A DNA stretch of 63,179 nt, filler included, from Hyphochytrium catenoides (Eukaryota > Protista > Hyphochytriomycota), in NCBI GenBank assembly GCA_900088475.1. It is 5 parts of 5 records of this genome, joined end to end, with 100 filler letters (N's around TTAATTAATTAA, not from the genome) between each part and the next. Parts side by side here need not be neighbours in the genome. Positions count along the whole stretch, not along the records: positions 1 to 29,190 come from FLMG01004394.1; 4 more parts are not named here. The stretch is one strand, 5' to 3'. A program made the translations under genes and the position numbers. This document shows positions 1,736 through 29,190 of this stretch, in pieces. How positions within the stretch are numbered: position 1 is the stretch's first letter; each line of letters begins with the position of its first letter. The notes beneath the pieces were generated by a model, which was not told the origin of the DNA, searched no databases, and was given only the letters and a program-made list of their open reading frames with translations.

Positions 1736-3353
1736 CGATATCCAGCCCTAATGCGCCTATCCTAAGAGCAGAGAAGACAGTAGCAATGACCGGCTTTTCC
1801 TAATTGGCGACTCGCATATTCGTACATTGTATAGAAACATTGTCCTCTTCGATGTCAGTCACTAGCAATCATAAAAATATAAGAGAGCCAAAAGCTGTCA
1901 CAAGCAGCGCAATCTAATTCTTCGTGATGGTCCTACTTTGACGATCCTTCTCCCTCCCGTGGCCAGCAGCAGTTTCTCAGAGGGTAAGGTAGCCACCAGT
2001 AAATAACAGGAGAGATCACGTAGTACACGACACAAGCTACTTCTTCATTCTCAAACTATGAGGTGTTCCGTGGCAGCCAGGGTCTGCTGCTGCTCTCCTC
2101 TCTTCCCGTCGCGGCTGGTTCCTACTACTGCTATATATGCTTTAATAGCTCCAAAGCTCTGTGCCTGGTGCTTCAATATGAGAACTCATGGTCGGGCCTG
2201 CTGCAGAGCGTAGTCACCTTCTTGCAGCGGTTATCACCGCACAGCAGCAGGAGGTCTGCTCTGGTCTGTTCTGCCAGTTGTGTCATCGCCCATCTTCCTG
2301 TCTGTCTGATGAGTGCTGAGAGAGGTCGATGGTTGAATCAGTTCCCCTCTCTCCCTCCTCCCTCCCTCTCCCTCTAAGAGCATGTCGTCCAAATCATCCG
2401 TGTAAGGCCGTTTCATTTTGGAGTGTGAGAACAGCAAAACGGATCATTCAAGCCATTTTCACCCTTCATTTTTCGCGGCCCCGCCATAATTGACAGTGTT
2501 TCCAGCATACGTTTCGCAGGTCAAAGAGCTTGAAAGTTGACTGGACGTGCCTAAATTTGACATTATTCGATAATCTACAAGTCATCATGCTGATCCTCTG
2601 TATGACGCACTTCTTGTCTGGCCGATGCTGGTCCGTCCCCATCATCATCGTGCATCTCTCCTCCCTCATCGCTCCTCCCGCTTCTTTTTTTAAGGCTTCT
2701 TGTTGCCTGGATGCAAGCCCGGCGGGTGATAAAGGATAGATCAACTCCTCCAGGACTGAAGAAGCTGGCAAAGGACCATGGATAGGAGGGAAGGATGTAA
2801 GAGAAAACACCTGCTGACAGAGCTCCGAAGCAGTGTCTTCTTCAGTGCTAGGGATTCTGGGGATAGAGGAAATGAGAGGGAACACGACTTCCCGCCCTTC
2901 ATCCTTCGTAGCGCCAGTCGGCATATGATGGGAGCACAATATGTGTAGAAGGACCTTTATCAGATATGATGAAGCTCCAAACGCCTTTCATGACAAGCGA
3001 AAGCCACGGACGGGGTTTGTCCCTCCTGCTGGGCCCTTCTGTGTACACCAGGATAAAGCAGCGGCAATCTTACTTTGTCGGCAGGTTATTGGAATAGCTT
3101 GAAGAAGCAACATACGTAAGGGGTGGGCCCAATCCTGAGACGCGGACGATAGTTGTTGAGCAAGGCAAAACGTGATGTCTTCGATTATACTCTGCCCCAC
3201 CACCACGGCATAGTAGTGGTGGATGAGGAAGGAGATCTAACCCTCTCTGCGGAGCAAACGGTGTGAGTCGAAGGCGAGAAATTTCATTCTATACTCCTCT
3301 CGTTCCTAGCTCTGTTGCCTCTTAGCTGAGAGAGAAAAGTGAGAGCTAGTAGA

Positions 3354-5564
3354 ATGTCGTCAATCCGGCAAAGTATCAGCTCTCTGTCCGGCGTTGTGCT
3401 TTGCAGAGACTCAATGGATGTTCGAGCAGATACCGCTATTCGGTTGCCTCGCTTCCATTTGCTGGGTCTTCTTTGGACTGTGGTTGAGCTTGCTATCTTC
3501 ATTGTAACACTGGTCAAGACGGATTTCTCGTTTGAATCCTCTGATCTAACGAGCCAGATGCTAAAGTCGGCCATCAACAATGACTTCCATGACGCAAATC
3601 TGACAAAAGAAGCTGCCCAAAGTCTGGGCACTTTAGAAGGTGGCTCGGTACTTGCGATGACGGTGGGCTCCCTTCAGGCAAATTCGGAGCACTGTGGGCC
3701 CGCTGTTGGCTCTCCCTACTTCATCTACACTAGTATACAAGCTCTACTCGCTATCGCCCATACGACGGAATGGAACTGGGATTTCCCAGGGGTCACCAAG
3801 CAAAGTGCCGCTTCTGCCACCAGTCTCTCCTCTCTTGCTGCTGTCGACGTGGATCATCCTTCTATCACCACTATAAACTATAGAGTATTGGATCTTCTTC
3901 TATGCAATCGCACAGAGCCCCTTCTGGACCAAAGATATAGTGTGAGCGGTGTCAGGCAATCATGCAAGGCTCCTGCAGTCCATCTAAACGCGAGTTTGAC
4001 AATAGATCTCTGCAACCACAAAGAAGACTTTGTCTTTCGCCTGCAAGTAGCTGGAGTTAAAAGCACCTGCCTTTTCAGCTTTCAACGCCGAGATCCTCTG
4101 TCTCCTGGCTCATTCGCCTTCTGTATCCGGTTTGGGAGACATGACTTGGATCGCCCAGATATGCAATGGCTTATCCGACGTTTACGGACTGCGTGGAATC
4201 GCATCGTCATATCCGCTTACATATGGATCCTCTCATCGGTTGTCATGAGAATCCTTTATTGGAGAACGCTTGTGAAGGTGACCCAGCGAAGTCTATGGCA
4301 TCTAAGGTACGAGTGCACCGATAAGCCGCGGTGCAATGGTACTCCAATTGTCAAAATGAAGGTATCCAGGGAGAGCAATGCCAGTAAAGTCGTACCTGGT
4401 CCAACATCAGCATCGTCACGCAGCAAGACGAGCTTGAGGAAAGCCACACTCAGCGGCACTTCCTTCCACGATTTCCTTACGGCTGCGTCCATTGGCGTTG
4501 CTTCCGCTAACAACGACTGGTGGTATTTGGGCCTTTCTATCGTCAGACAAGTACTGGGTGCTCCATACGGTGAGCTGATGACCGTCTCTTCAGTTACAGT
4601 TCCACTAGCAGCTTGGCAAGCCTTCGGAATTGTCGTCTATCACCAAGCAGTAATCCAGCTCTTCTTCTTGAGTTGCGGTCAGCTGTTTGACAGGCGTGGG
4701 CCCACTCTCCCTATCATTAGGGATGTCGGAGTGCTCGGCTATACGTCACTGATTTATTTGGCCGTGGTCGTGCAGCTAAATCAACTCTATAATTATGACC
4801 TCGGTTATCTCTGCACAGCTATTACCCGCGTTGTAGCTTCATGCTGGTGGTTGGTCCTACCAGCCTGTGGTCCTGATGAGCCCTGCTTATACATCCGAGG
4901 AGACATTATCGCACACCTATTGGCCGCTATCTATGTCTCAATTGGTGCACTGCTGATCCAAATGTTCGTTCGTGGAAAATTGACGCCCTTCAACCTCCTG
5001 AGAAGGAGATCAAAAATGTCAGTACAGGATGTCGACAAGCGTCCTTCAGAGAAAGAAACGTTTTCAAAGGCTGTTGCCAACAACAAGCCGCTGAGGAGCA
5101 GCAGAAGCAACAAGGGGCACACCTCCTGGAACCCCCTCGGGACTGTCGGATGCCCACATTGCGGCTATTGCCTTGTAGAGCAGACTGCTCTTCTATCGCT
5201 TACCTTAGCAACTTCTTCCTCCTCGATAGCATCCTCTCTTATTACGGATGTCAGTGAGCCCACCGCAAAGAAGCAGGAAGTAACTCATTTCGTTGCCAGT
5301 GAGCAGAACGGCCACATGACGAAGGAAGACGGACCTCCCAGGGACAGCTTCGGAAGCTGCGCCCAGCCACATCGGAACTGTTGTCTAATCTATAGCTGCT
5401 CTCCAAGTAATGACGCATGCTCAGGCGGCAGTATTGCGCTTCCTCGACAAGGGCAGGAGGAAGATAAGAAGACGATGCTATGCTCCCATCGCTTTGTTTC
5501 TCCTGCAATACTAGAAGTTCATACTCAAAGCATAAGGGGAGTTCGCCCAGGGCTGTCATCATGA
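3354..5564 (+). CDS. Uncharacterised Cys-rich multi-pass membrane protein, paralogue 2
   Basis: 741-aa ORF (first ATG at 3354). Motifs PRFHLLGLLW, DFSFESSDLTSQMLKS, LDLLLCNRTEPLLDQRY, HLRYEC, ANND, RGD, GCPHCG are shared with the other paralogues. Confidence 0.9.
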   Translation: MSSIRQSISSLSGVVLCRDSMDVRADTAIRLPRFHLLGLLWTVVELAIFIVTLVKTDFSFESSDLTSQMLKSAINNDFHDANLTKEAAQSLGTLEGGSVLAMTVGSLQANSEHCGPAVGSPYFIYTSIQALLAIAHTTEWNWDFPGVTKQSAASATSLSSLAAVDVDHPSITTINYRVLDLLLCNRTEPLLDQRYSVSGVRQSCKAPAVHLNASLTIDLCNHKEDFVFRLQVAGVKSTCLFSFQRRDPLSPGSFAFCIRFGRHDLDRPDMQWLIRRLRTAWNRIVISAYIWILSSVVMRILYWRTLVKVTQRSLWHLRYECTDKPRCNGTPIVKMKVSRESNASKVVPGPTSASSRSKTSLRKATLSGTSFHDFLTAASIGVASANNDWWYLGLSIVRQVLGAPYGELMTVSSVTVPLAAWQAFGIVVYHQAVIQLFFLSCGQLFDRRGPTLPIIRDVGVLGYTSLIYLAVVVQLNQLYNYDLGYLCTAITRVVASCWWLVLPACGPDEPCLYIRGDIIAHLLAAIYVSIGALLIQMFVRGKLTPFNLLRRRSKMSVQDVDKRPSEKETFSKAVANNKPLRSSRSNKGHTSWNPLGTVGCPHCGYCLVEQTALLSLTLATSSSSIASSLITDVSEPTAKKQEVTHFVASEQNGHMTKEDGPPRDSFGSCAQPHRNCCLIYSCSPSNDACSGGSIALPRQGQEEDKKTMLCSHRFVSPAILEVHTQSIRGVRPGLSS

Positions 5565-5873: not shown

Positions 5874-7041
5874 CTACGTCTTTCCAGCGCTATTTGTGGC
5901 ACGGCTCGAAGGAGAAGCAGCACTAGGAGAAGTAGGAGCGGAGGCGCCCGGTTGTTTCTCATCATCAGTCGTCTCCATCACGCTGGTCTTGTTCGAGGAT
6001 TGCGCCCGCCGGGTCTGAGCCATCTTCTCTGAGAATTGCTTAGACTCATTTCTCTTTGATTGAGCTCTGCCCTTGAAGTCAACTGCCTTGCTTCCGTCTG
6101 TCGTATTGACGAACGTCTGGATCTTTGTAATCTGACACTCCGTTGCATAACAGTTTCCTATAATTGCTGGGCCAAGCATATGTCTAAGGACGTATCCCAG
6201 AACGTTGCACCAGGCCTTCATCAGACTTATGGTCGACTTTTCTTCCAGTGCAAGGGCTAGGGAGTTAAGGAGTGTCTCGCAGTATACACTGTACATCCAG
6301 GGACGAATGCCGCCCTTCGTGCGATGAACAATGCCCATGTCTAAACAAAGAACCATTAGAGTGTCAGTTGCGGAACAAGCCAGGGTTCAACGACGGAAGC
6401 AGGAGAAGTTGGAAGAAATGGAAGAGCTACGATCGCTGTTCAAGTAGCAGATGCTCTTGGAGTGATTGGCACCAACAAGCACAAAGCCAAGATTAAAGGA
6501 AAAAGGCAGCGATCTTGCGTGACTCACAATAAAGCTTCTTCTTCGCATTTTCCGGGTCAGATACGTCCAAATGCGTCACAAACTCCAACACTGTGACTAG
6601 CACTTCTCCTTGCTTCTTTAGGTCGCCATGGAAAACTTCTGTGAACTGTTGGGAGCGGTCGTAGAGCTGCAAGTAGAAGTTCGTGTAGAGAAAGGCTAGC
6701 CTCGATACATTGTCGTGGTTAGTCATCTTTGTTGTCTTCACTTGGTGCCAGGCCTCTCTGGTAGTGCAGAGAATTCACAAGGTATGATTGTTAGTTGCCC
6801 CGCTTCCAGGGTGCAAGAGAAATACGATACGTAGACCCTACCGACATCGCTGGACCATGTCTGTGGATATTTCTGGATGGATTGGAAATGTAGGTGGATA
6901 ATAGTGCTCCGCAATTTGTTTCTCAGAGTACCGATCTAGAGCATTGTAGGCTCGCAAGGAGGAATCGTCACCATTAGCACCGTCGGCCCCCGCAGGACAG
7001 AAACCTCCACCAGGAGCGCAACCCGGTTGGCATTGCCCCAT
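5874..7041 (-). CDS. Single-domain globin with N-terminal Gly2/Cys motif; exons 7041-6842, 6757-6528, 6340-5874 (298 aa)
   Basis: GT-AG introns join three ORFs in frame (200+230+467=897 nt). Globin landmarks: A-helix W (EAWHQV), B10 Tyr (NFYLQL), CD1 Phe (EVF), E7 Gln (KKQGEVL), proximal F8 His (GIVHRTKGGIRP), H-helix KAWCNVLGYV. Confidence 0.88.
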
Positions 7042-10268: not shown

Positions 10269-12569
10269 TTAAGTGTGCACCGGCATAAACCGGTAGCCAT
10301 TCCAGATCTGCGGTGTGCGCTGATTCTGCTCTCCCGCCTGCTTAGAGGGCCTACTACTGTCGACAGGAGCATTTGTTTTGGCGTCACACCACTTTGTGCT
10401 TTCAATCACTCGACGTTGGCTGTCACTCTTCTGCGACGCACTGCCCCCGTGTATAGTCTCTTCTTCACGGCATTGACTCTCTGCTCCGCCTTGAATCGTT
10501 GCTCCGCCAACCAGCACATTGTTTAAGGTTGAACTTTCCCGGACTATCCAGTTGCCACATTGAGGGCATCCCACTCTGCCAAGGTAATGAAGCCAATCTC
10601 TCGTCCCGCTGCTGCTACTCTTTGACACTGTTTCTTTATCATCAGTGGCCTCTTTTGTAGGGATTGCCGCTGGAACATGGATCCTACTTTGGCCTGTGGT
10701 CCCGCTGGCCGGGATCACTATCTTAGAAGGGCCAGTCTTGTTCCGCTTCTTCTTCCAGAAGTAGATTGAGCTCTGCAAGGAGAGACAAAGAAGTGACGTG
10801 TAGATTGGTCCAATCGTGTGCACGACAACGTCACCTCGGAGGTACATACAAGGTCCAATATCTACGCCGCAGCCAGGCAACACCAGCCACCAGAAGGAGC
10901 TAACCACCCAGTTACTTAGGCGGAAGAAAAATAGGAAGTCAATATTGAGTAGCTGGACGGACTGAACCGCAGTTCCAAGCACTAACATTGAGATGTATCC
11001 AAGAACTCCGACGTCCACTATTCCAGTGAGTCTTCTCCTGCCGAGCCATGTACTTGCCAGGCGATCCAAGGCGTGATAGATCACCTGGAGTGCGGCCTCA
11101 TGGTAAACTACCATTCCCAGGGCTTGCCAAGCAGCTAGGGGCATTGTCACCGCTGAAGCAGTCAGGATTTCTGAATAGATGGCGCCCAACACTTGTCTCA
11201 CCACGGCCAAACCAAAATACCAAGGATCATTGTTGGCCACAGCTACACCAATGGAAGCTGCAGCAAGTAGGTCCTGCAGGTTATCTAGACCTCCTGGACT
11301 CTTGGCGTTTGCTCTCTTTGCGCCAGAAGAGACTTCTCTTCCAGCGGAAGGTACGGCCTTCTTTGGCGCTCTGGAGTGACTGAGATTGCCCAGTAGTCCA
11401 CTTGCCCTCCACCACCCTGCCTTCTTCTTGGGTGACTTGGATGTAGAAGTTGACCCGTCTCGGTAGTCTCGTTTTTGGGCCTTCAGCTTTCGGTTGCATT
11501 CGCCCCTGAGATGCGCTAGGCTGCTCTTAGTGACCTCTATGGCAGTACGGAAGTATGCTATTCTCATAGCGATGGAAAGGAGTATCCAACAAAGGCCAGA
11601 CGCCCGGATGCGGTTCCAAATAACCTCCAGGCGCTGAAGTATCCACCGCAAATCGTCACGTCTCATGTCCGTATCGCTAAAGTGAATACATGGGAAGGAC
11701 CATCCTTTCAAAGGATCCGGCCTTGTGATGGCCCATATGCACACACTCTTGACTCCAGCCACCTCGAGCCTGAAGTAGTACTTCTCTCGCTGATGGCACA
11801 TGGCCATAATGTCAGTAAGGTTTGTAAATACAGCCGAGCCCTTACAAGGATGAGATATGTGGCTCACAATATACCTCTGATCAAAAAGCAGTTCGCCGTG
11901 CCTGTTACAGAGAAGGAGATCCAGTAGTTGGTTCGTGAGAAAGCTGCCGGTCTCTTCCAATGAGCTATTTTTTAGGTCTAGATGAACGGGTGCCCCTCTT
12001 CTTGCCAAGTCTTGCTCGATCTTGTTCGTTCTCGCCATCACCGCATTCAGAGCCTGGAAGCCTGCATAGATGTAATACTGGCCGCCCGGCACAGCACCGC
12101 AGTAGTCCGAGCCATCATCCTTGATGAACCCCCACGCCATAGTGACAATGGACATTTCTTTAAGAGCGGATGGAGAGATGCCTGTTGACTGCTCATTTAA
12201 CACATTCGAGCTTGACTTGAGCATCTGCGTAGTCATATCCATGGACTCAAAAGAGTAGTCTAAGCTTGCAAGCGTGACAAGGAAGATTGCCAACTCAATA
12301 AAGATCCATAGTGTGCCCAGAAAGTGGAATCTGGGCATTGAGAAGACTATCTTTTGGCGCACATGGAGATGGTCTCTCTCAAACAGAAGTCTTTTCCAAG
12401 AAGGCTCCGTGTTGATGGCCATGACCATGCTGGTGGGTATCGGCTGTGCAGAATAGTCTCCCAAAGCCCCTCCTCTGTTGAGAGACGGTGCCTCATCATC
12501 CTCTTCACTTTGATAAGGTCTGCAACTTTTATCTCCAACTTTGATTGACTTTTGCTTAGCGCTGCTCAT
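10269..12569 (-). CDS. Uncharacterised Cys-rich multi-pass membrane protein, paralogue 3 (766 aa)
   Basis: ATG-initiated ORF with PRFHFLGTLW, DYSFESMDMTTQMLKS, DYCGAVPG, FDQRY, HLRGEC, ANND, DVGVLGY, RGD, GCPQCG and terminal GYRF. Confidence 0.9.
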   Translation of the reverse strand: MSSAKQKSIKVGDKSCRPYQSEEDDEAPSLNRGGALGDYSAQPIPTSMVMAINTEPSWKRLLFERDHLHVRQKIVFSMPRFHFLGTLWIFIELAIFLVTLASLDYSFESMDMTTQMLKSSSNVLNEQSTGISPSALKEMSIVTMAWGFIKDDGSDYCGAVPGGQYYIYAGFQALNAVMARTNKIEQDLARRGAPVHLDLKNSSLEETGSFLTNQLLDLLLCNRHGELLFDQRYIVSHISHPCKGSAVFTNLTDIMAMCHQREKYYFRLEVAGVKSVCIWAITRPDPLKGWSFPCIHFSDTDMRRDDLRWILQRLEVIWNRIRASGLCWILLSIAMRIAYFRTAIEVTKSSLAHLRGECNRKLKAQKRDYRDGSTSTSKSPKKKAGWWRASGLLGNLSHSRAPKKAVPSAGREVSSGAKRANAKSPGGLDNLQDLLAAASIGVAVANNDPWYFGLAVVRQVLGAIYSEILTASAVTMPLAAWQALGMVVYHEAALQVIYHALDRLASTWLGRRRLTGIVDVGVLGYISMLVLGTAVQSVQLLNIDFLFFFRLSNWVVSSFWWLVLPGCGVDIGPCMYLRGDVVVHTIGPIYTSLLCLSLQSSIYFWKKKRNKTGPSKIVIPASGTTGQSRIHVPAAIPTKEATDDKETVSKSSSSGTRDWLHYLGRVGCPQCGNWIVRESSTLNNVLVGGATIQGGAESQCREEETIHGGSASQKSDSQRRVIESTKWCDAKTNAPVDSSRPSKQAGEQNQRTPQIWNGYRFMPVHT

Positions 12570-17276: not shown

Positions 17277-19394
17277 ATGGGAGACATGTCAGGCCAGGAA
17301 GCAAAGAAGAGTTCGCAAGCGCATGGGTTCATTTCCCATCGCCTCTCATCCTGCTGGAAAAATGTTATTCTCCACCGCAGGGACGTCCATATAACGCCTG
17401 GCCAATTGTCGCTACCGCGGTTCCACCTTTTCGGTGCTTTATGGATTGGACTGGAGCTCCTTATCTTCATTATTACACTGACGCAGATGGACTACTCCTT
17501 TGAATCGATGGATATGACCACGCAGATGCTGAAGTCACGCTCAGACCAACAAGCACTTCTTCAAAATCAAGAGCAAGAGCTCCGAGAAAGTGGAAAAAAG
17601 CTGGAAGACATGTCATTTGTCACGATGGCGTGGGGCTCGGTTCGAGACCCATCAGACTATTGCGGAGCCATACCAGGTTCTCAGTACTACATATACGCAG
17701 GATCACAGGCACTTCGGGCTGTCCTGGCCTCCTCTAGCAGTGATCATGACCACCGCAGCCTGAGCGAGAGCATAGTTTGGCCAATTACTCGGCAAGCAAA
17801 TCGAAGACAACCTAGCGCTGAGACTAAGGGTGCAAATAGCATTACTTCTTCACCAGCTTACGTAGATGGAGAGGAAGAGGCTTTCACGAGCAAGCTTCTA
17901 GATTTGCTTCTCTGCCTGCGAATGGATGAACCACTTTTCGACCAGAGGTATATTGTCAGCAATAGCATTCATCCTTGCAAGGGGCCCGGAGTCTTTCTAA
18001 ACCTTACCGCTGTTTTGGGGCTCTGCAAGAGCAAAAAGGACTTTCACGTGAGACTGGAAGTTGCAGGCGTCAGAAGTCTATGCATCTTCGGCATATCAAA
18101 GACGGATCCATTGAGCAGCTGGTCAGTTCCGTGTATAAGGTTCGGGACAAAAGATATGGAAAGTCCCGATCTTTTGTGGATTCTCCCTGAGCTTGAAGGA
18201 TTGTGGAACCGGATAAAACTTTCTGCTTGGTCTTGGATTCTTCTCTCCATTTTGATGAGAACGGTGTACTGTTGGACAGCAGTACAGGTCACGCGGAAAA
18301 GCTTGACTCATCTGAGAACCGAATGCCAAGCTTATTGTGTACGTCCATCCAAGAGTAACTCATTTCAACTGGCTAAAACAGCAGAAGAGTCAGTGCTGTC
18401 ATCTGTAGGGGAGTCAGAATTCGAAGAATCGAGACAAGCAGACCCGTGTGCTATATTTGGCATCTCGAGTGTCGATCTACGAAGGTTTTTAACAGCTGCT
18501 TCGCTCGGTGTGGCTTGCGCAAACAACGACGCTTGGTATCTGGGACTAGCGGTGCTTAGACAGATCCTCGGCGCAATATACGGCGAAATATTGACAGGCT
18601 CGGCGGTGACAACACCATTGGCCGCTTGGCAAGCCCTTGGCATGGTCGCATATCATGAAGCAGTCATCAAGCTTGTGCAGTATGGACTAACTACTTACAG
18701 AATCACCGGCAGGAATAGAGCACCATTATCTGCAATTACCGATGTGGGCATCTTAGGTTACATGTCGATGTTACTATTGGCAACGACAGTGCAGCTGATC
18801 CAGCTATTTGATATTGACCTCTTCTACTTCTTCCGCTTGGTCAACGCCATCATCGCGGTCAGTTGGTGGCTCATCTTTCCTGCTTGCGATGTTGATGGGC
18901 CTTGTCTCTATATGCGAGGAGACATCATGATACACACACTTGCAGCTGTGTATACCTCCATCTTCGTGATAGCTTTATTCGCCGCAAAGAGGGCTTGGAG
19001 GGGCCGATTGTGGAGCCATGCATTTCACCCCGACGTGATCTTTTCCTGGCACCACTACTTGGGAATTATTGGATGTCCACACTGCGGCTGCGCGCTGCTC
19101 CGGGCGAGCGCGGTACTAGAGAATTCTGCTATAAAGAAGAAGGAAGAAATTTTCCTCTCTTGCAAGGACCAAGTCTATCTCGGGTCTGCAGCGGATAGTG
19201 AAGTCAAAACCACTTCTGCAGGAATAAAAGGACGTCCATTACGGAAGGAGATAGGTATCTATGAAGAGGAAACAAGCATAAAGACGTCGAAAGTAGTAGC
19301 GCACCGCCTGCCTCCTCTTCCACGACGAGAGGTCAGGAGGTATAGCTTCCTGCCAATGAAGGAGATAGAGACATTCTTCGGCTACCCCGGCTAA
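17277..19394 (+). CDS. Uncharacterised Cys-rich multi-pass membrane protein, paralogue 4 (705 aa)
   Basis: ATG-initiated ORF with PRFHLFGALW, DYSFESMDMTTQMLKS, DYCGAIPG, EPLFDQRY, HLRTEC, ANND, DVGILGY, CDVDGPCLYMRGD, GCPHCG and RYSF. Confidence 0.9.
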   Translation: MGDMSGQEAKKSSQAHGFISHRLSSCWKNVILHRRDVHITPGQLSLPRFHLFGALWIGLELLIFIITLTQMDYSFESMDMTTQMLKSRSDQQALLQNQEQELRESGKKLEDMSFVTMAWGSVRDPSDYCGAIPGSQYYIYAGSQALRAVLASSSSDHDHRSLSESIVWPITRQANRRQPSAETKGANSITSSPAYVDGEEEAFTSKLLDLLLCLRMDEPLFDQRYIVSNSIHPCKGPGVFLNLTAVLGLCKSKKDFHVRLEVAGVRSLCIFGISKTDPLSSWSVPCIRFGTKDMESPDLLWILPELEGLWNRIKLSAWSWILLSILMRTVYCWTAVQVTRKSLTHLRTECQAYCVRPSKSNSFQLAKTAEESVLSSVGESEFEESRQADPCAIFGISSVDLRRFLTAASLGVACANNDAWYLGLAVLRQILGAIYGEILTGSAVTTPLAAWQALGMVAYHEAVIKLVQYGLTTYRITGRNRAPLSAITDVGILGYMSMLLLATTVQLIQLFDIDLFYFFRLVNAIIAVSWWLIFPACDVDGPCLYMRGDIMIHTLAAVYTSIFVIALFAAKRAWRGRLWSHAFHPDVIFSWHHYLGIIGCPHCGCALLRASAVLENSAIKKKEEIFLSCKDQVYLGSAADSEVKTTSAGIKGRPLRKEIGIYEEETSIKTSKVVAHRLPPLPRREVRRYSFLPMKEIETFFGYPG

Positions 19395-21830: not shown

Positions 21831-22457
21831 AGGTTAGCGTTCATCAATGCAGCTGATAATTACTTCTTGTATACGTGGTACTATCAAGCGTCGTTCTTGC
21901 AATCTCTAGTGACCCCAGAAAGCGAGATCCGACGGGCGAGGGTAACGGCACAGCGCTGAAGAGTGGCCTCAACGTTGAGTAAGCGCAGAAGAGTAGGCCC
22001 GGGACTCGGCGTCAAGGAGTGTCTCATTTCCAGAAATGAGGCTTCTCTTCTTTTCCCTCGTCTCGCTCTTTGTCTCCGCTCCCTCTGAAAGTGGTCTTAC
22101 AATCTTTTTTCTCTATTCCTTTCCACTTCTTCTTTGTTCTCTATTTATTATCTAAGAGGGGTTCCCGTTGCTGCTATTTTTGACAAGTCCAGCTCTACAT
22201 AATTCTTCTCTCTCAAGAAGCGTCGACAACAGGACGAACAAACCTGGTAAGTCTTCCTTCTGCCTGGCTCTCTTAAGGCAGAGACTTAGGGTGGACTTTA
22301 GGTTCGCCCTGAGGTGGCTATAACGCTGGTGCCTATAGTGCATGTAGGCTAATCCTAGCCCAGAATCTAATAAGCTGGTTCCAGACTGGCCCGGTAGGGT
22401 ACCTAGGATCAAGAACCTAGATTGTCATTTTCTAGGCTGGCAGGTAGATTGGCAGCC

Positions 22458-22606
22458 TCCATCCAGAGCTTAGTGAAGGCTTAGGGTTAGGCTAGGGCAT
22501 TGGCAGCCTCACCCAGCCTAGGCTTGCAGGTAATTTGGTAGCGTCATACATCCAGAGCTTAAGTGACGACTTAGGGTTGTGGCTAGGGCATTGGCAGCCT
22601 CACCCA
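22458..22606. repeat. Local ~60-bp direct duplication containing TTAGGG
   Basis: catccagagctta..ttagggtt..ggctagggcattggcagcctcaccca occurs twice. Confidence 0.75.
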
Positions 22607-23094
22607 AAGCTTATGGAAAGGCCGTCATCATGGATGGCTGTTAAGGCAGGTGATTACCCTTTCGCATTCTCTGCTGTATTTCTCCTTTTCCTCCTTGACT
22701 CACTTTGGCGCATCCCATCTCGATCCCCTCTTTTCAGTCTTTCTCTCCCTCTTTCTCCCTTCTTGTTGGTCTTCAAATTTTGCCAACAATAAGTCACTGC
22801 TCCCGGTTCCCTTTTGAATTCTCTGTCCTCTTGCTAACCCACCTGTCCGTCTCCTCCTCCTCCTCCTCTTCTCTCTGTGTCTCTCTGTGTCTCTCTCTCT
22901 TTCTCTCTATTCCTCTCTCTCTTTTTCTCTCTCTCTTTTTTTCTCTCTCTCTCTTTTTCTCTCTCTCTCTCTCTTTCTCTCTCTTCTCTGTCTCTGTCTC
23001 TCTCTCTTTCTCTCTCTTTTCTCTCTATATTCTCTCTCTATTCTCTCTCTTCGCTCTCTCTATACATATGTATTGTATTCCTCGGTTAAATATC

Positions 23095-24690: not shown

Positions 24691-25018
24691 GCTCTTGGTA
24701 TTCTTTTGATGGGTTATAGAGTCATGGCCATATTGGGCAAGGACATCACCACTTTCAACTATCACCGCTTATCCTGCTCCGAGCTTGTTTCCGTCAACCA
24801 CTGTAGTCGTTGCCTCAATTCTGAAGCTTCCAGTTTCTTCCACACACTGTCAGGTCGGCGCCGTCCTTGGCCTTGGTATCGCTGCCGCCTTTTGCGTAAA
24901 GAAAGTTCAGTGGAGCCTTATGGGTAAAATCGTTGTTGCCTGGCTCTTCACTGTTTCTGCCGCTGCACTCGTCTCAGGTGTGCTATCTTGGCTTGTCCAG
25001 TTTGCCTTTAGGACTTAG
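24691..25018 (+). pseudogene. C-terminal fragment of a PHO4/PiT-family phosphate transporter, frameshifted
   Basis: ALGILLMGYRVMAILGKDIT, then a frameshift near 24790 to TTVVVASILKLPVSSTHCQVGAVLGLG...VQWSLMGKIVVAWLFTV, the PiT C-terminal signature (PVSSTH). No upstream part is present. Confidence 0.8.
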
Positions 25019-26160: not shown

Positions 26161-26471
26161 GTAGACCTATATGAAAGACGGGTTGAATTTCTCACCTGCG
26201 TCCCTCCTCATCTTGCCCTCTCCTGGTCTCAAAACCCTTCTTATTCTGTTCTCTCTTGCCTCAATGGCTAGACAGCTCTTTGTTTCCTCCTCTTCGTTCC
26301 CGGCAAGCTTTCTGTCCTATACTTAGCATACTCTATCTCTTCTGTCTTTCCATCAGCCCTAGCCAACGCTTAGATAAACTCATCAACTTCTATTGGCCAC
26401 CTCTTGACTTTGCTCCCACCTTATCCAACCTGCCTCTCCCCTCCATCACTCTTCTTCGCTTGTTCCTCTCT

Positions 26472-26514
<43 letters not shown>

Positions 26515-29190
26515 CTCTCTCTCTGTCTCTCTCTCTCTCTTTCTCCCCATATACGTACCATATATACATGACGTAGCGTCTACTTTTTTCATTGATATTT
26601 ATTTTCCACTTCTTGCTCCAAGCATTCCCTCTCTTCCTACCGTCTCTCTCATGCTCTCACTCTGTCCTTCATCCTTCTAGTCAATTTCTCCATCTATCTT
26701 AATCTTATACTCTCCAAGAACGAATATTCAATTTATGTACCTCTTCTCTCTCTGTGGTTCTGTCACCCAAATTTAAGTCGCAGCCTTCTTCTTTATTCTA
26801 GCCTACTTTTCCACCCTTTCCCAGCTAAAGTCCCAGGCGTACCTAACGTCAGTATTCGCCTCTAACCTCATCAATTCTCTCTACAGCGGCTTCCGATATA
26901 GCACTCTTTTTGTCTGCTCTCCTATGCACAGGTTCTTAGTGCTATTAGCATTTCCTTAGTCTCCTTCATCTCTGAAAGAGCACATATCTCATCCTCATCT
27001 GCAATCTACATCGTCGTTAGTAAAGTTTATCTCTGACTAGCGTTACTCGGGTGATCAAGAGTTGCGTGAAAGGATCTCATGGACAGACTCAGAGACTGAA
27101 GAACGAGACCAGCAAAAAACAGGAAGCTCTGCACCGACAACTAGGAACCTGTTGCAAGCTGAAAAGCTGAGGGGAAGGAAACCGGTAGCGACAGGAAGAT
27201 AAAGGATCAGAGGGTAATAGGTTTACGTAGCCAAGAAGCGAGGAGGGAGCACTCTTCCGGCGTTATGGGATGATACCATGCTGATGATGTCTGATAGGCA
27301 TATTAAGTATTTCGTACCTACCGTTGGTCCCAACGTATTACTTCCCGCAGCATTTCCCAGTCTCTTCCTTTACACCGCTTTCGGAGCAACAAGGTGATGT
27401 TTTCCCGAGAACCTCTTCCTCCTTGAACTGGCGATAGCTTTTGTATTCCAGCTCGTATAGCTACAGTGCCCTGCTTTTCATGCTATCCCTCAAATCTGCG
27501 TCCTCTTCTCTTTTTTCATCAAAAACATTGCCTGGAGCTCATGAGCCTCTTCGGTCAATGCCCGTGCATCCGAGAAAAAGGAGGGGGATGAAAGGAGGGA
27601 GGAAAGCTTCGCGGAGACATCTTCAGCAAGAATCCTGCAAGCAGGTAATTGAGACGGCAGAAGGGGTCTGTCCTCTCCAGCGCGCGTCGGACAAAGGAGA
27701 GCGAATAGAAGCAAACGCAACCTACCTTCTCTATGTTGCCTGTGCCATGAACCCAACCTTCTCTCTGCTGGAGAAGTTCCAAGCATACCCTATCTAATCA
27801 CTGCAATAACCAGGAAGAGCGAGAGAGAGAGATAGAAAGAGAGAAGAGATTGAAGACAGAAGGGAGTGAAGTGGATGAAGGAGCCAGAGGAAGAAATTAA
27901 TAAAAAGAGAAGAATGGAAAGAGGTATGTATGGAATGCAAGGCAGTCAAAGGAAAGACCCCCAGAGCTATGAGGGAGGAAGGGAGGAAAAAGAGGGAGAG
28001 GAGGGAACTCAGAAGCTCCTCTCGCTTATGAAGAGGGAGTAGGGTATTGTTTCTCTCTGCTCTCGTCAACGGCCTTAAGATAAGAGGACATCTTCTCCAC
28101 GTTGAGGCACTTCTTGCTCTTTTAACGGTACCACTCAGGAGATACAGTGGCCATCTGTTCTCTGCTCTCTCTGTCCCTCTATCGTTCTCGCTCCTACTTT
28201 CTGATGCGCTCCTTGCTTAGGAAGAGGGAGTGGGGTAGTGTTTTTCTCTGCTCTCGTCAACTGTTTAAGACAAGAGAATGACAAGTTCTCATTTCATGTC
28301 TAACCAGAATTTCTAGCGATAACGGTCAGGGAGACACAGGGGATGTCCTCTGCTTCTGGTTCTCTATCTCTCTGTTCTTCTCTTGTCCTCTATTCTTCTC
28401 GCTCCTTCTGATGCTCCTTGTTGGCTTTCTCTTCTTGTCCCTCTATCGTCTATTAAATGAGGGAGAATACGGAAGGTTGTGTGTGTTTTTTTACACGAAG
28501 AAAGAAATCGAAATAAGAATAGGAGAGAAGGACAATTGATAATGGGGACCTCTCTTCCGTCCCTCTCTCTCTCTCTTCACGATTCTCCTTTCTTTTCCCC
28601 ACCATTCCTTCTTGTTTGAACCACTATGTTCTATTCTTGAGTACGGCTACGCTCGATCTGTCTACTTAGGATTCTCTAGTCATTGATAGCCTTGTCCAGC
28701 ACTTGCTTTCCTGCTGGACTATAACCTGGAACAACAGTAAGGCGCAAGTCTCCAGGTGGAACGCACGGCAAACGCTCGACGGTGTAGCGCTGAAGGAAGG
28801 TGGAGAGATCTGAGATCTGCTTGTCATTCAAAGACGCACCTTTCCTGCAAGTTGGTTTGAGGGCATACACTCAATGCAGTACAAGACTGTTTCCGGCTGC
28901 CTTGGATCTTTTTAACCTAACATGGCCCCGCACACCTTGCAACCGGAACAGATACTGCTTGCAGCTCCACACTAGTCTTCAAAGCATTTGTCAAGCTCTG
29001 CAAGTCTATCTGCTGAATGTTGATAAGAAAGGGAGCTTTTATCAAGGTTTTGGAAGCTAATGAGGACGGGAGTTGTTGCCAGGAGGGAAAGAGCACCAAC
29101 AATATTTGTCCGGAGGATGGATATCGCGAATAGGGGTAGATGTAAGGAATGGGACTGTGGTCTAAGGGGAAAATCTATTAATGAGAATGA

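Follow-up and report, generated by a model that had tools for sequence, protein, structure and literature searches.

Hyphochytrids are a sparsely studied sister group of the oomycetes. The window analysed here, a stretch of 63,179 nucleotides from the genome of Hyphochytrium catenoides (assembly GCA_900088475.1), carries at positions 17277-19394 an intronless gene that encodes a 705-amino acid (aa) protein of an orphan family. Comparison of this gene with its paralogs, together with database searches, shows an ancient, expanded and apparently lineage-restricted family of polytopic glycoproteins that has been kept under selection. It is highly probable that these are real, selected polytopic membrane proteins whose N- and C-termini both lie inside. 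H. catenoides is a free-living soil 'pseudofungus' with a uniflagellate zoospore (PMC5795050). Counting the gene under study, the window contains four family members:

17277-19394, plus strand: gene under study, a polytopic membrane glycoprotein of the orphan family; intronless, intact open reading frame (ORF) of 705 aa
194-1735, plus strand: paralog, its 5' half missing in a scaffold gap (N run read as X)
3339-5564, plus strand: paralog, intact, 736 aa from the first ATG, 39% identity to the 705-aa protein
10269-12569, minus strand: paralog, intact, 766 aa, 47% identity to the 705-aa protein

The plus-strand frame at 17277-19394 is free of stop codons across all 705 aa, and the three window paralogs share 38-47% identity with its product. 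The scaffold gap at approximately 200-260, which lies inside the ORF at 194-1735, removes the first transmembrane helix (TM1) and most of the ectodomain of that paralog; the lost N-terminal half may lie in the gap or past the end of the contig. A six-frame search that covered the whole genome (61.0 Mb in 4759 contigs, the window contig being C3358) returned 38 matching stretches, which correspond to at least 17 substantial loci together with fragments and two stop-bearing copies. The family is found on contigs C3358, C4617 (four copies), C441, C1634, C372, C2609, C3894, C1787, C1543, C1066 and others. In particular, at least nine full-length paralogs are uninterrupted, intact ORFs of 705-882 aa that are mutually 35-47% identical. 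Family fragments with in-frame stops (TGA and TAA) adjoin intact copies at C4017:4626-5108 and C441:113196-113753. They are probable pseudogenes, and the presence of such fragments beside intact copies points to birth-and-death turnover in the arrays.

When paralogs are compared with one another, synonymous differences are saturated (proportion pS ~0.78), nonsynonymous ones make up a proportion (pN) of ~0.46, and the frames are still open. Since the sequence features described below are kept across copies with saturated synonymous sites, they are far beyond chance. In a quick tree with terminal branches of ~1.4 changes per site, the gene under study pairs with the paralog at 10269-12569, its nearest relative (Shimodaira-Hasegawa-like approximate likelihood ratio test, SH-aLRT, 99), and the paralog at 3339-5564 pairs with that at 194-1735. 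This pairing of window neighbours suggests that the arrays grew through old local duplication. Genes of H. catenoides have 3.64 introns each (PMC5795050), which makes uninterrupted ORFs of 2.1-2.6 kb atypical for this organism. The family goes unmentioned in the genome paper, where neither 'orphan' nor 'tandem' occurs and the three uses of 'transmembrane' include some in reference titles (PMC5795050). Identity differs strongly between regions of the protein, amounting to 55% in the membrane core, 28% and 37% in the N-terminal and C-terminal halves of the ectodomain, respectively, and 11.7% in a cytosolic loop. The N-terminal half of the ectodomain, the cytosolic loop and the tail are the fast-evolving parts.

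Outside the genome itself, searches for relatives turned up nothing but one near-identical metagenomic copy of a paralog. Pfam searches at E<=10 with the 705-aa protein and 11 paralogs gave nothing relevant, only single chance matches. Neither a word-index protein search, nor a profile search of the PDB at E<=10, nor a scan of JGI metagenomes with family patterns returned a match, and an ESM Atlas feature search with the whole protein and with residues 396-582 returned no usable one (residue numbers are those of the 705-aa protein throughout). In an exhaustive hmmsearch, 1.84 billion cluster representatives, standing for ~15 billion public proteins including viral ones, yielded a single sequence, P0001. 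This 764-aa protein comes from the Logan assembly of run SRR28521206, a rhizosphere metagenome (contig SRR28521206_32006, here L013), and is 96.6% identical not to the gene under study but to another paralog, at C4617:771. L013 carries that paralog (94.8% over 3.9 kb) and the start of its neighbour. The coding DNA of the two versions is 98% identical and the upstream flank 90%, with 35 gaps; for the pair as a whole, the ratio of nonsynonymous to synonymous changes (dN/dS) comes to 0.37, with values of 0.12-0.30 for the ectodomain and the core. Since the reference strain is reported to have a heterozygosity of ~2.75% (PMC5795050), P0001 may represent an allele or strain variant and not another species. 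A rhizosphere metagenome run (X4) also yielded one 207-nt contig that is 99.5% identical to positions 17447-17653; X4 is presumably the same run as SRR28521206. Both metagenome sources with near-identical DNA date from 2024. The near-identical DNA in a rhizosphere metagenome suggests that the organism, or a close strain, lives in plant-root soil. Judged by these searches, the family appears to be confined to the hyphochytrid lineage.

The architecture of the protein was derived from paralog alignment, hydropathy and two AlphaFold2 models. The full-length model had 11 paralogs in its alignment and a predicted local distance difference test score (pLDDT) of 51, with ~35-75 in the ectodomain, whereas the core model (residues 296-625) was built from 16 sequences and reached a pLDDT of 69.5 and a predicted TM-score (pTM) of 0.51, with helices at 76-91. 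Both alignments have little depth, being made up of paralogs only. The following parts are distinguished, all on the plus strand:

17424-17492, plus strand: TM1, of signal-anchor type (residues 50-72), the strongest hydropathy peak at 2.2-2.3
17493-18212, plus strand: ectodomain (residues ~73-312, ~240 aa), from the paralog alignment
18213-18293, plus strand: TM2 (residues 313-339), from hydropathy and alignment, pLDDT 86-91 in the core model
18327-18467, plus strand: hypervariable K/R/S-rich loop (residues 351-397), predicted to be disordered and cytosolic
18468-18704, plus strand: most conserved core (residues 398-476, 55% identity), from alignment and core model
18705-18743, plus strand: short variable basic loop (residues 477-489), GRNR in the 705-aa protein
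18744-18875, plus strand: helix 490-511, a tight acidic turn and helix 515-533, from alignment and core model
18876-18923, plus strand: acidic Cys-pair loop PxCGPDGPC...RGD (residues 534-549), from the alignment
18924-18995, plus strand: last spanning helix (residues 550-573, with H553 and Y559), from hydropathy and alignment
19047-19391, plus strand: cytosolic tail, from the paralog alignment

A previous, sequence-only reading of this gene had described TM1, a Cys-rich ectodomain with N-glycosylation sequons, and then TM2 followed by a variable, mostly basic loop; the alignment bears out this N-terminal layout. Just before TM1 lies a conserved cytosolic motif, W-K-x-L-L..R..LHV..LPRFH. Within the ectodomain, six cysteines (C129, C213, C234, C250, C269 and C286) are invariant in all 14 paralogs that cover it, and two sequon positions are conserved, one near residue 214 (CNRT or CNRS, seven paralogs) and one near 242 (NLT or NAS, eight paralogs). 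TM2 contains the invariant residues M327, R328 and Y331 and is followed by a conserved SLxHLRxEC motif (H345, C350); the 21 residues after TM2 include on average ~7 K/R. The K/R-rich loop at 351-397, with its mean identity of 11.7%, ranges from 45 to ~120 aa among paralogs.

The core at 398-476 comprises helix A (LTAASIGIACANND), helix B (YLGLAVLRQILGAxYGE) and helix C (PLAAWQAFGIVVYHEA), and its invariant residues are N416, R428, Q429, Y435, E437, W451, Q452 and Y459. The sequence-only reading had placed two more helices here; helices are indeed present, but AlphaFold draws three or four of them (398-416, 419-431, 433-442 and 446-476). The short basic loop said to follow them recurs across the four window members, with RRKE, DRRG and GRRR as the counterparts of GRNR. 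The next elements, a helix and an amphipathic segment ending in a Cys pair, are likewise found. Conserved positions of helix 490-511 are D489, G494, Y495, S497, Q506 and Q509; D514 lies in the turn and W531 in helix 515-533, whose hydrophobic moment of 0.30 is the highest among the hydrophobic helices. C537 and C543 are kept in 13/16 and 14/16 paralogs, respectively, and probably form a disulfide. As had also been noticed, basic residues come after the last helix (WRRRRRNK and WKKKRNK in paralogs); they belong to a K/R-rich stop-transfer stretch with a mean of 9.5 K/R in 18 residues. Moreover, in the membrane-embedded polar motifs singled out earlier, namely NND (416-418), RQ (428-429), YxE (435-437) and RGD..H (547-553), every position is invariant or at least 90% conserved among the 11-16 paralogs aligned.

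The tail carries the motif W591..LG.VGCPxCG (C600, C603) in 16 of 16 tails. Downstream of it, a CCLxxxCxH motif occurs in eight of nine other tails and is absent from the 17277-19394 copy; to judge from their sequence, the two motifs look like a zinc-binding knuckle. At the very C-terminus, a Y-x-F-[LMI] motif (YSFL in the 705-aa protein, YRFM/L in most paralogs) has what we take to be the form of a tyrosine-based sorting signal, which argues for a cytosolic C-terminus.

The distribution of charged residues bears on how the protein is threaded through the membrane. The mean number of K/R is 3.8 before TM1, 6.9 after TM2, 3.9 in the loop 472-490 and 9.5 after the last helix, while the proposed outside loops and turns have 0-1.6, with values near zero at 414-421, 440-447 and 510-516 and a low value in the Cys-pair loop. 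The exception to this bias is the ectodomain stretch just before TM2, with ~4.0 K/R. If the Cys-rich glycosylated domain and the Cys-pair loop are outside, both termini are inside, and a 7-span topology is disfavoured because it conflicts with this location of the termini. Since the helix triplets at 398-476 and 490-573 are each flanked by inside loops, one helix of each triplet should not span the membrane. In the first triplet this is most likely the short helix 398-416 with its terminal ANND, and in the second helix 515-533, whose hydrophobic moment exceeds that of the others. Among the topologies considered, a 6-span arrangement with both ends inside fits the charge bias best. The favoured order is therefore a cytosolic N-terminus, TM1, the Cys-rich glycosylated loop, TM2, the cytosolic loop, two spanning helices, the cytosolic basic loop, a helix, a non-spanning amphipathic helix with the outside Cys-pair loop, the last helix and the cytosolic tail. 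As to the earlier suggestion that the penultimate segment is re-entrant, the observations point both ways: the charge bias favours a non-spanning 515-533, but the hydrophobicity of this helix (0.53) is on par with that of the spanning helices.

Comparison of the models with known structures did not place the family. An exhaustive structural aligner gave best Z-scores of 6.6 and 7.6 for the full-length and core models, respectively, in both cases to short helical hairpins only; the value of 7.6 spans 65 residues and falls in a range that is uninformative for helical proteins. A second structural comparison reached at best Z 5.9. Foldseek found no match at E<=0.001 in the PDB with either model, nor among viral models (BFVD), and the Atlas structure search gave TM-scores of at most 0.27. 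An internal-repeat test that compared 396-478 with 486-580, and TM2 with both, detected no similarity. An aquaporin-like arrangement with two half-helices was considered and dropped, as no aquaporin appeared in any fold search. The protein shows no detectable kinship with TRP/PKD or another known family, and, as far as the models allow, no solved or predicted fold seems to match its core.

The explanation that is tentatively favoured, at just short of an even chance, is an old orphan family of polytopic glycoproteins with a diversified sensor or channel-like role. Its combination of a conserved core, fast-evolving exposed parts and tandem intronless arrays resembles that of diversified receptor or ligand-gated channel families. 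In the proposed mechanism, the N-terminus would be cytosolic and TM1 would serve as a signal anchor for an N-glycan-bearing ectodomain of ~240 aa, held together by three probable disulfides. After TM2, a disordered cytosolic loop would lead into a polar, conserved core of six helices, four of which probably span the membrane, while the other two, 398-416 and 515-533, are probably sunk into it without crossing. The cytosolic tail would carry the CPxC zinc-knuckle-like motif and the Y-x-x-hydrophobic sorting-type motif. Acting as a diversified cell-surface or endomembrane sensor, the protein might bind external cues through its variable ectodomain; the invariant polar core (R328, N416, R428, Q429, E437, Q452, D489, D514 and R547) would pass on a signal or a small ion or solute, and regulation and sorting of the protein would fall to the variable parts in the cytosol, the loop and the tail. 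A sensor or channel-like function, as opposed to that of a housekeeping transporter or enzyme, is itself quite possible, though short of probable.

Several points weigh against this proposal. Function is read purely from the architecture and the family dynamics, and a transporter or an intramembrane enzyme would account just as well for the conserved polar core. The models, based on only 11-16 paralogs, are moderately confident (pTM 0.47-0.51), and the lack of a fold match may be due to model error. Lineage restriction holds only beyond the genus-level neighbourhood, and three small sequencing runs of the same species contained no match to the gene. As regards topology, eight spans would leave both termini inside and misplace a single basic loop, on the outer side; with helix 515-533 as hydrophobic as a transmembrane helix, the 8-span alternative stays in contention.

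In that 8-span topology, which the sequence-only reading missed, both short helices span as well and the ends stay where they are. The protein would then be either a secondary transporter or an intramembrane enzyme, in monomeric or dimeric form and with all eight helices crossing the membrane; its substrate or catalytic site would be built from invariant buried residues (Arg, Asp, Glu, His, Asn and Gln), and the ectodomain would serve in the lumen for accessory functions or quality control. AlphaFold does draw eight long helices with tight hairpin turns of 3-5 residues (A-B, B-C, 511-515), the hydrophobicity of 515-533 suits a spanning helix, many invariant charged or polar residues lie within hydrophobic helices, and the Cys-pair loop stays outside with both termini inside. 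However, the K/R-rich loop 472-490 would then be located outside, contrary to the positive-inside rule, and helix A has only ~14-17 apolar residues. Internal repeats, which are common in transporters, were not found, and neither the families nor the folds of transporters and enzymes gave a match; at least 17 diverged copies with a fast-evolving ectodomain would be unusual for a housekeeping enzyme. All in all, this explanation is rather unlikely, even if it deserves serious weight.

The most far-reaching reading is a new class of membrane signalling protein with an unseen fold, namely a ligand-gated channel or receptor that arose and diversified within hyphochytrids as an independent, non-TRP solution to environmental sensing in a zoosporic soil organism. 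Here, the half-embedded helices would line a polar pathway, with the ANND-capped helix 398-416 entering from inside and helix 515-533 with the CGPDGPC..RGD loop from outside, and the ectodomain would gate it. This scenario is unlikely at present.

The sequence-only reading had compared the predicted layout with that of TRPML/TRPP channels and inferred a possible ligand-gated channel. The corresponding explanation is a tetrameric 6-TM P-loop cation channel that is either convergent with or extremely diverged from TRPML/TRPP and gated by the ectodomain. Residues 50-72 would be S1, the ectodomain the S1-S2 domain, 313-339 S2, 398-476 S3-S4 and 490-511 S5, and 515-533 would be the pore helix, the acidic CGPDGPC..RGD loop the filter and 550-573 S6. 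Order and sidedness of the segments do agree with S1-loop-S2...S5-P-S6. As in TRPML, TRPP and PKD2 (PF08016; 6-TM P-loop tetramers with a large lumenal or extracellular S1-S2 domain), the favoured topology has a cytosolic N-terminus, TM1, a disulfide-bonded and N-glycosylated loop of ~200-250 aa and TM2; then come a cytosolic loop and two helices, a short linker in the cytosol, another helix, a stretch of ~37 residues, a last helix and a cytosolic tail. In particular, the 37 residues between 490-511 and 550-573, an amphipathic helix and an acidic loop, are of P-loop-like size, the short, basic loop 477-489 is reminiscent of an S4-S5 linker, and the organism has a zoospore stage (PMC5795050).

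Sequence and structure comparisons, on the other hand, do not connect the family with these channels. None of the 11 paralogs matched Ion_trans (PF00520) or PKD_channel (PF08016) at E<=10, in agreement with the earlier statement that no TRP similarity was visible. Applied to the whole genome at E<=1, PF08016 found true PKD genes and nothing at the family loci. These bona fide PKD_channel genes (C4384:60105-60455, C1935:17028-17438, C48:3690-4097 and C244:7705-8550; best exon E 4.6e-23) are unrelated to the family, and hhalign of the family helices 396-582 (TM3-TM6 profile) against the genome's own PKD pore exons gave a probability of 0.09%. TRPV6, TRPV5, TRPV2, TRPV3 and TRPC align with the core model at Z 3.5-4.7 over 61-85 residues, but the aligned model residues (~4-138) correspond to TM2 and helices A and B and not to the 490-573 pore region; the Foldseek TRP match to the core model has E 3.4 and a TM-score of 0.11. 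PKD2 (6wb8_A) aligns with the full-length model at Z 5.0 over 73 helical residues only, and no PKD2/TRPML (polycystin/TOP) ectodomain matched this model, in which the ectodomain has a pLDDT of ~35-75. The family further differs in having three or four helices at the place of S3-S4, a disordered loop of 45-120 aa at the S2-S3 position, and only three residues between 490-511 and the putative pore helix, which leaves no turret. A tetramer model of four copies of 396-582, made with ESMFold2 without the paralog alignment, scored 0.00 with an uncertain fold and pLDDT <50, and gave no answer. Thus, membership in TRP/PKD is not supported, and a TRP-like tetrameric P-loop channel, which forms a minor share of the sensor or channel-like possibilities, is very unlikely; the more general inference of a channel is neither refuted nor supported.

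The surroundings of the array were also inspected. All remaining ORFs of the 29-kb contig have at most 160 aa. Two of them, at 5874-6356 (minus strand, 160 aa) and 6493-6741 (minus strand, 82 aa), fall into the interval from the second paralog to the third; neither has a significant Pfam match, and they could be either noise or exons that belong to some unrelated gene. Downstream of the array, a short ORF at 24785-25015 (plus strand) matches positions 290-350 of the 350 of Pfam PHO4 (E 5.4e-17) and is evidently the last exon of a multi-exon gene for a PiT-type phosphate transporter, which indicates that the region is ordinary intron-bearing host DNA. An Rfam scan of the window gave no match. 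The right third of the 29-kb contig is gene-poor and shows a strong strand asymmetry, with an AT skew down to -0.37; the right part also contains two copies of a 91-bp tandem repeat with telomere-like TTAGGGTTAGG and two long (CT)n microsatellites, one with 101 and the other with 40 repeat units (together at 22432-22606, 22866-23061 and 26466-26545). If a mobile or viral element, such as the integrated giant-virus DNA reported for the H. catenoides genome, carried the family as cargo, this would explain the intronless, multi-copy state of the genes and their arrays on many contigs, but such an origin is hardly credible given the ancient copies (saturated synonymous sites, terminal branches of ~1.4) in place of recent insertions, the ordinary multi-exon phosphate transporter gene next door, and the absence of a viral structural match, of a homolog among 15 billion proteins including viral ones, and of a transposase or integrase ORF among the other window ORFs.

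Two other systems may be compared with the favoured family of sensor or channel-like glycoproteins. Wntless/GOST-type receptors (TM1, lumenal domain, 7-TM bundle) share with it a signal-anchor TM1, a folded lumenal domain, a helical bundle and a cytosolic tail with a tyrosine-based sorting motif. In contrast to these receptors, the orphan family has at most seven helices after the ectodomain, a cytosolic C-terminus and even parity, and its ectodomain model is mixed alpha/beta and not a GOLD beta-sandwich. GPCR-like structures align with the model at Z 3.5-5.4 only, and there is no corresponding Pfam match. Expanded lineage-specific chemoreceptors are represented by mammalian odorant receptors, insect OR/GR channels and fungal PTH11-like receptors. 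By analogy, and as a matter of general knowledge, these families also consist of many diverged tandem paralogs, often intronless, with a conserved core and fast-evolving exposed parts; the orphan family, however, shows no relationship to them by either homology or fold.

Among other genes of H. catenoides, the intronless mitochondrial HSP70 has its best named matches in oomycetes (Pythium, Albugo, Saprolegnia, Aphanomyces and Lagenidium), at 74-77%, with none closer. The lineage markers SRS, AMA-1 and elicitin gave no match in the genome, an uninformative outcome, as the controls stayed silent too. What is new in the present case concerns the family and its fold placement, and not a demonstrated new mechanism. 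A conserved, selected glycoprotein family of at least 17 members without a known relative or fold is a candidate for a lineage-specific invention. If the core proved to be a diverged version of a known fold, the finding would be of lesser value, as it would annotate a large block of 'hypothetical' genes. If it were a new permeation or signalling fold, it would join the small set of independently evolved membrane sensor architectures. The family may thus bear on how a free-living zoosporic saprotroph senses its surroundings or exchanges with them.

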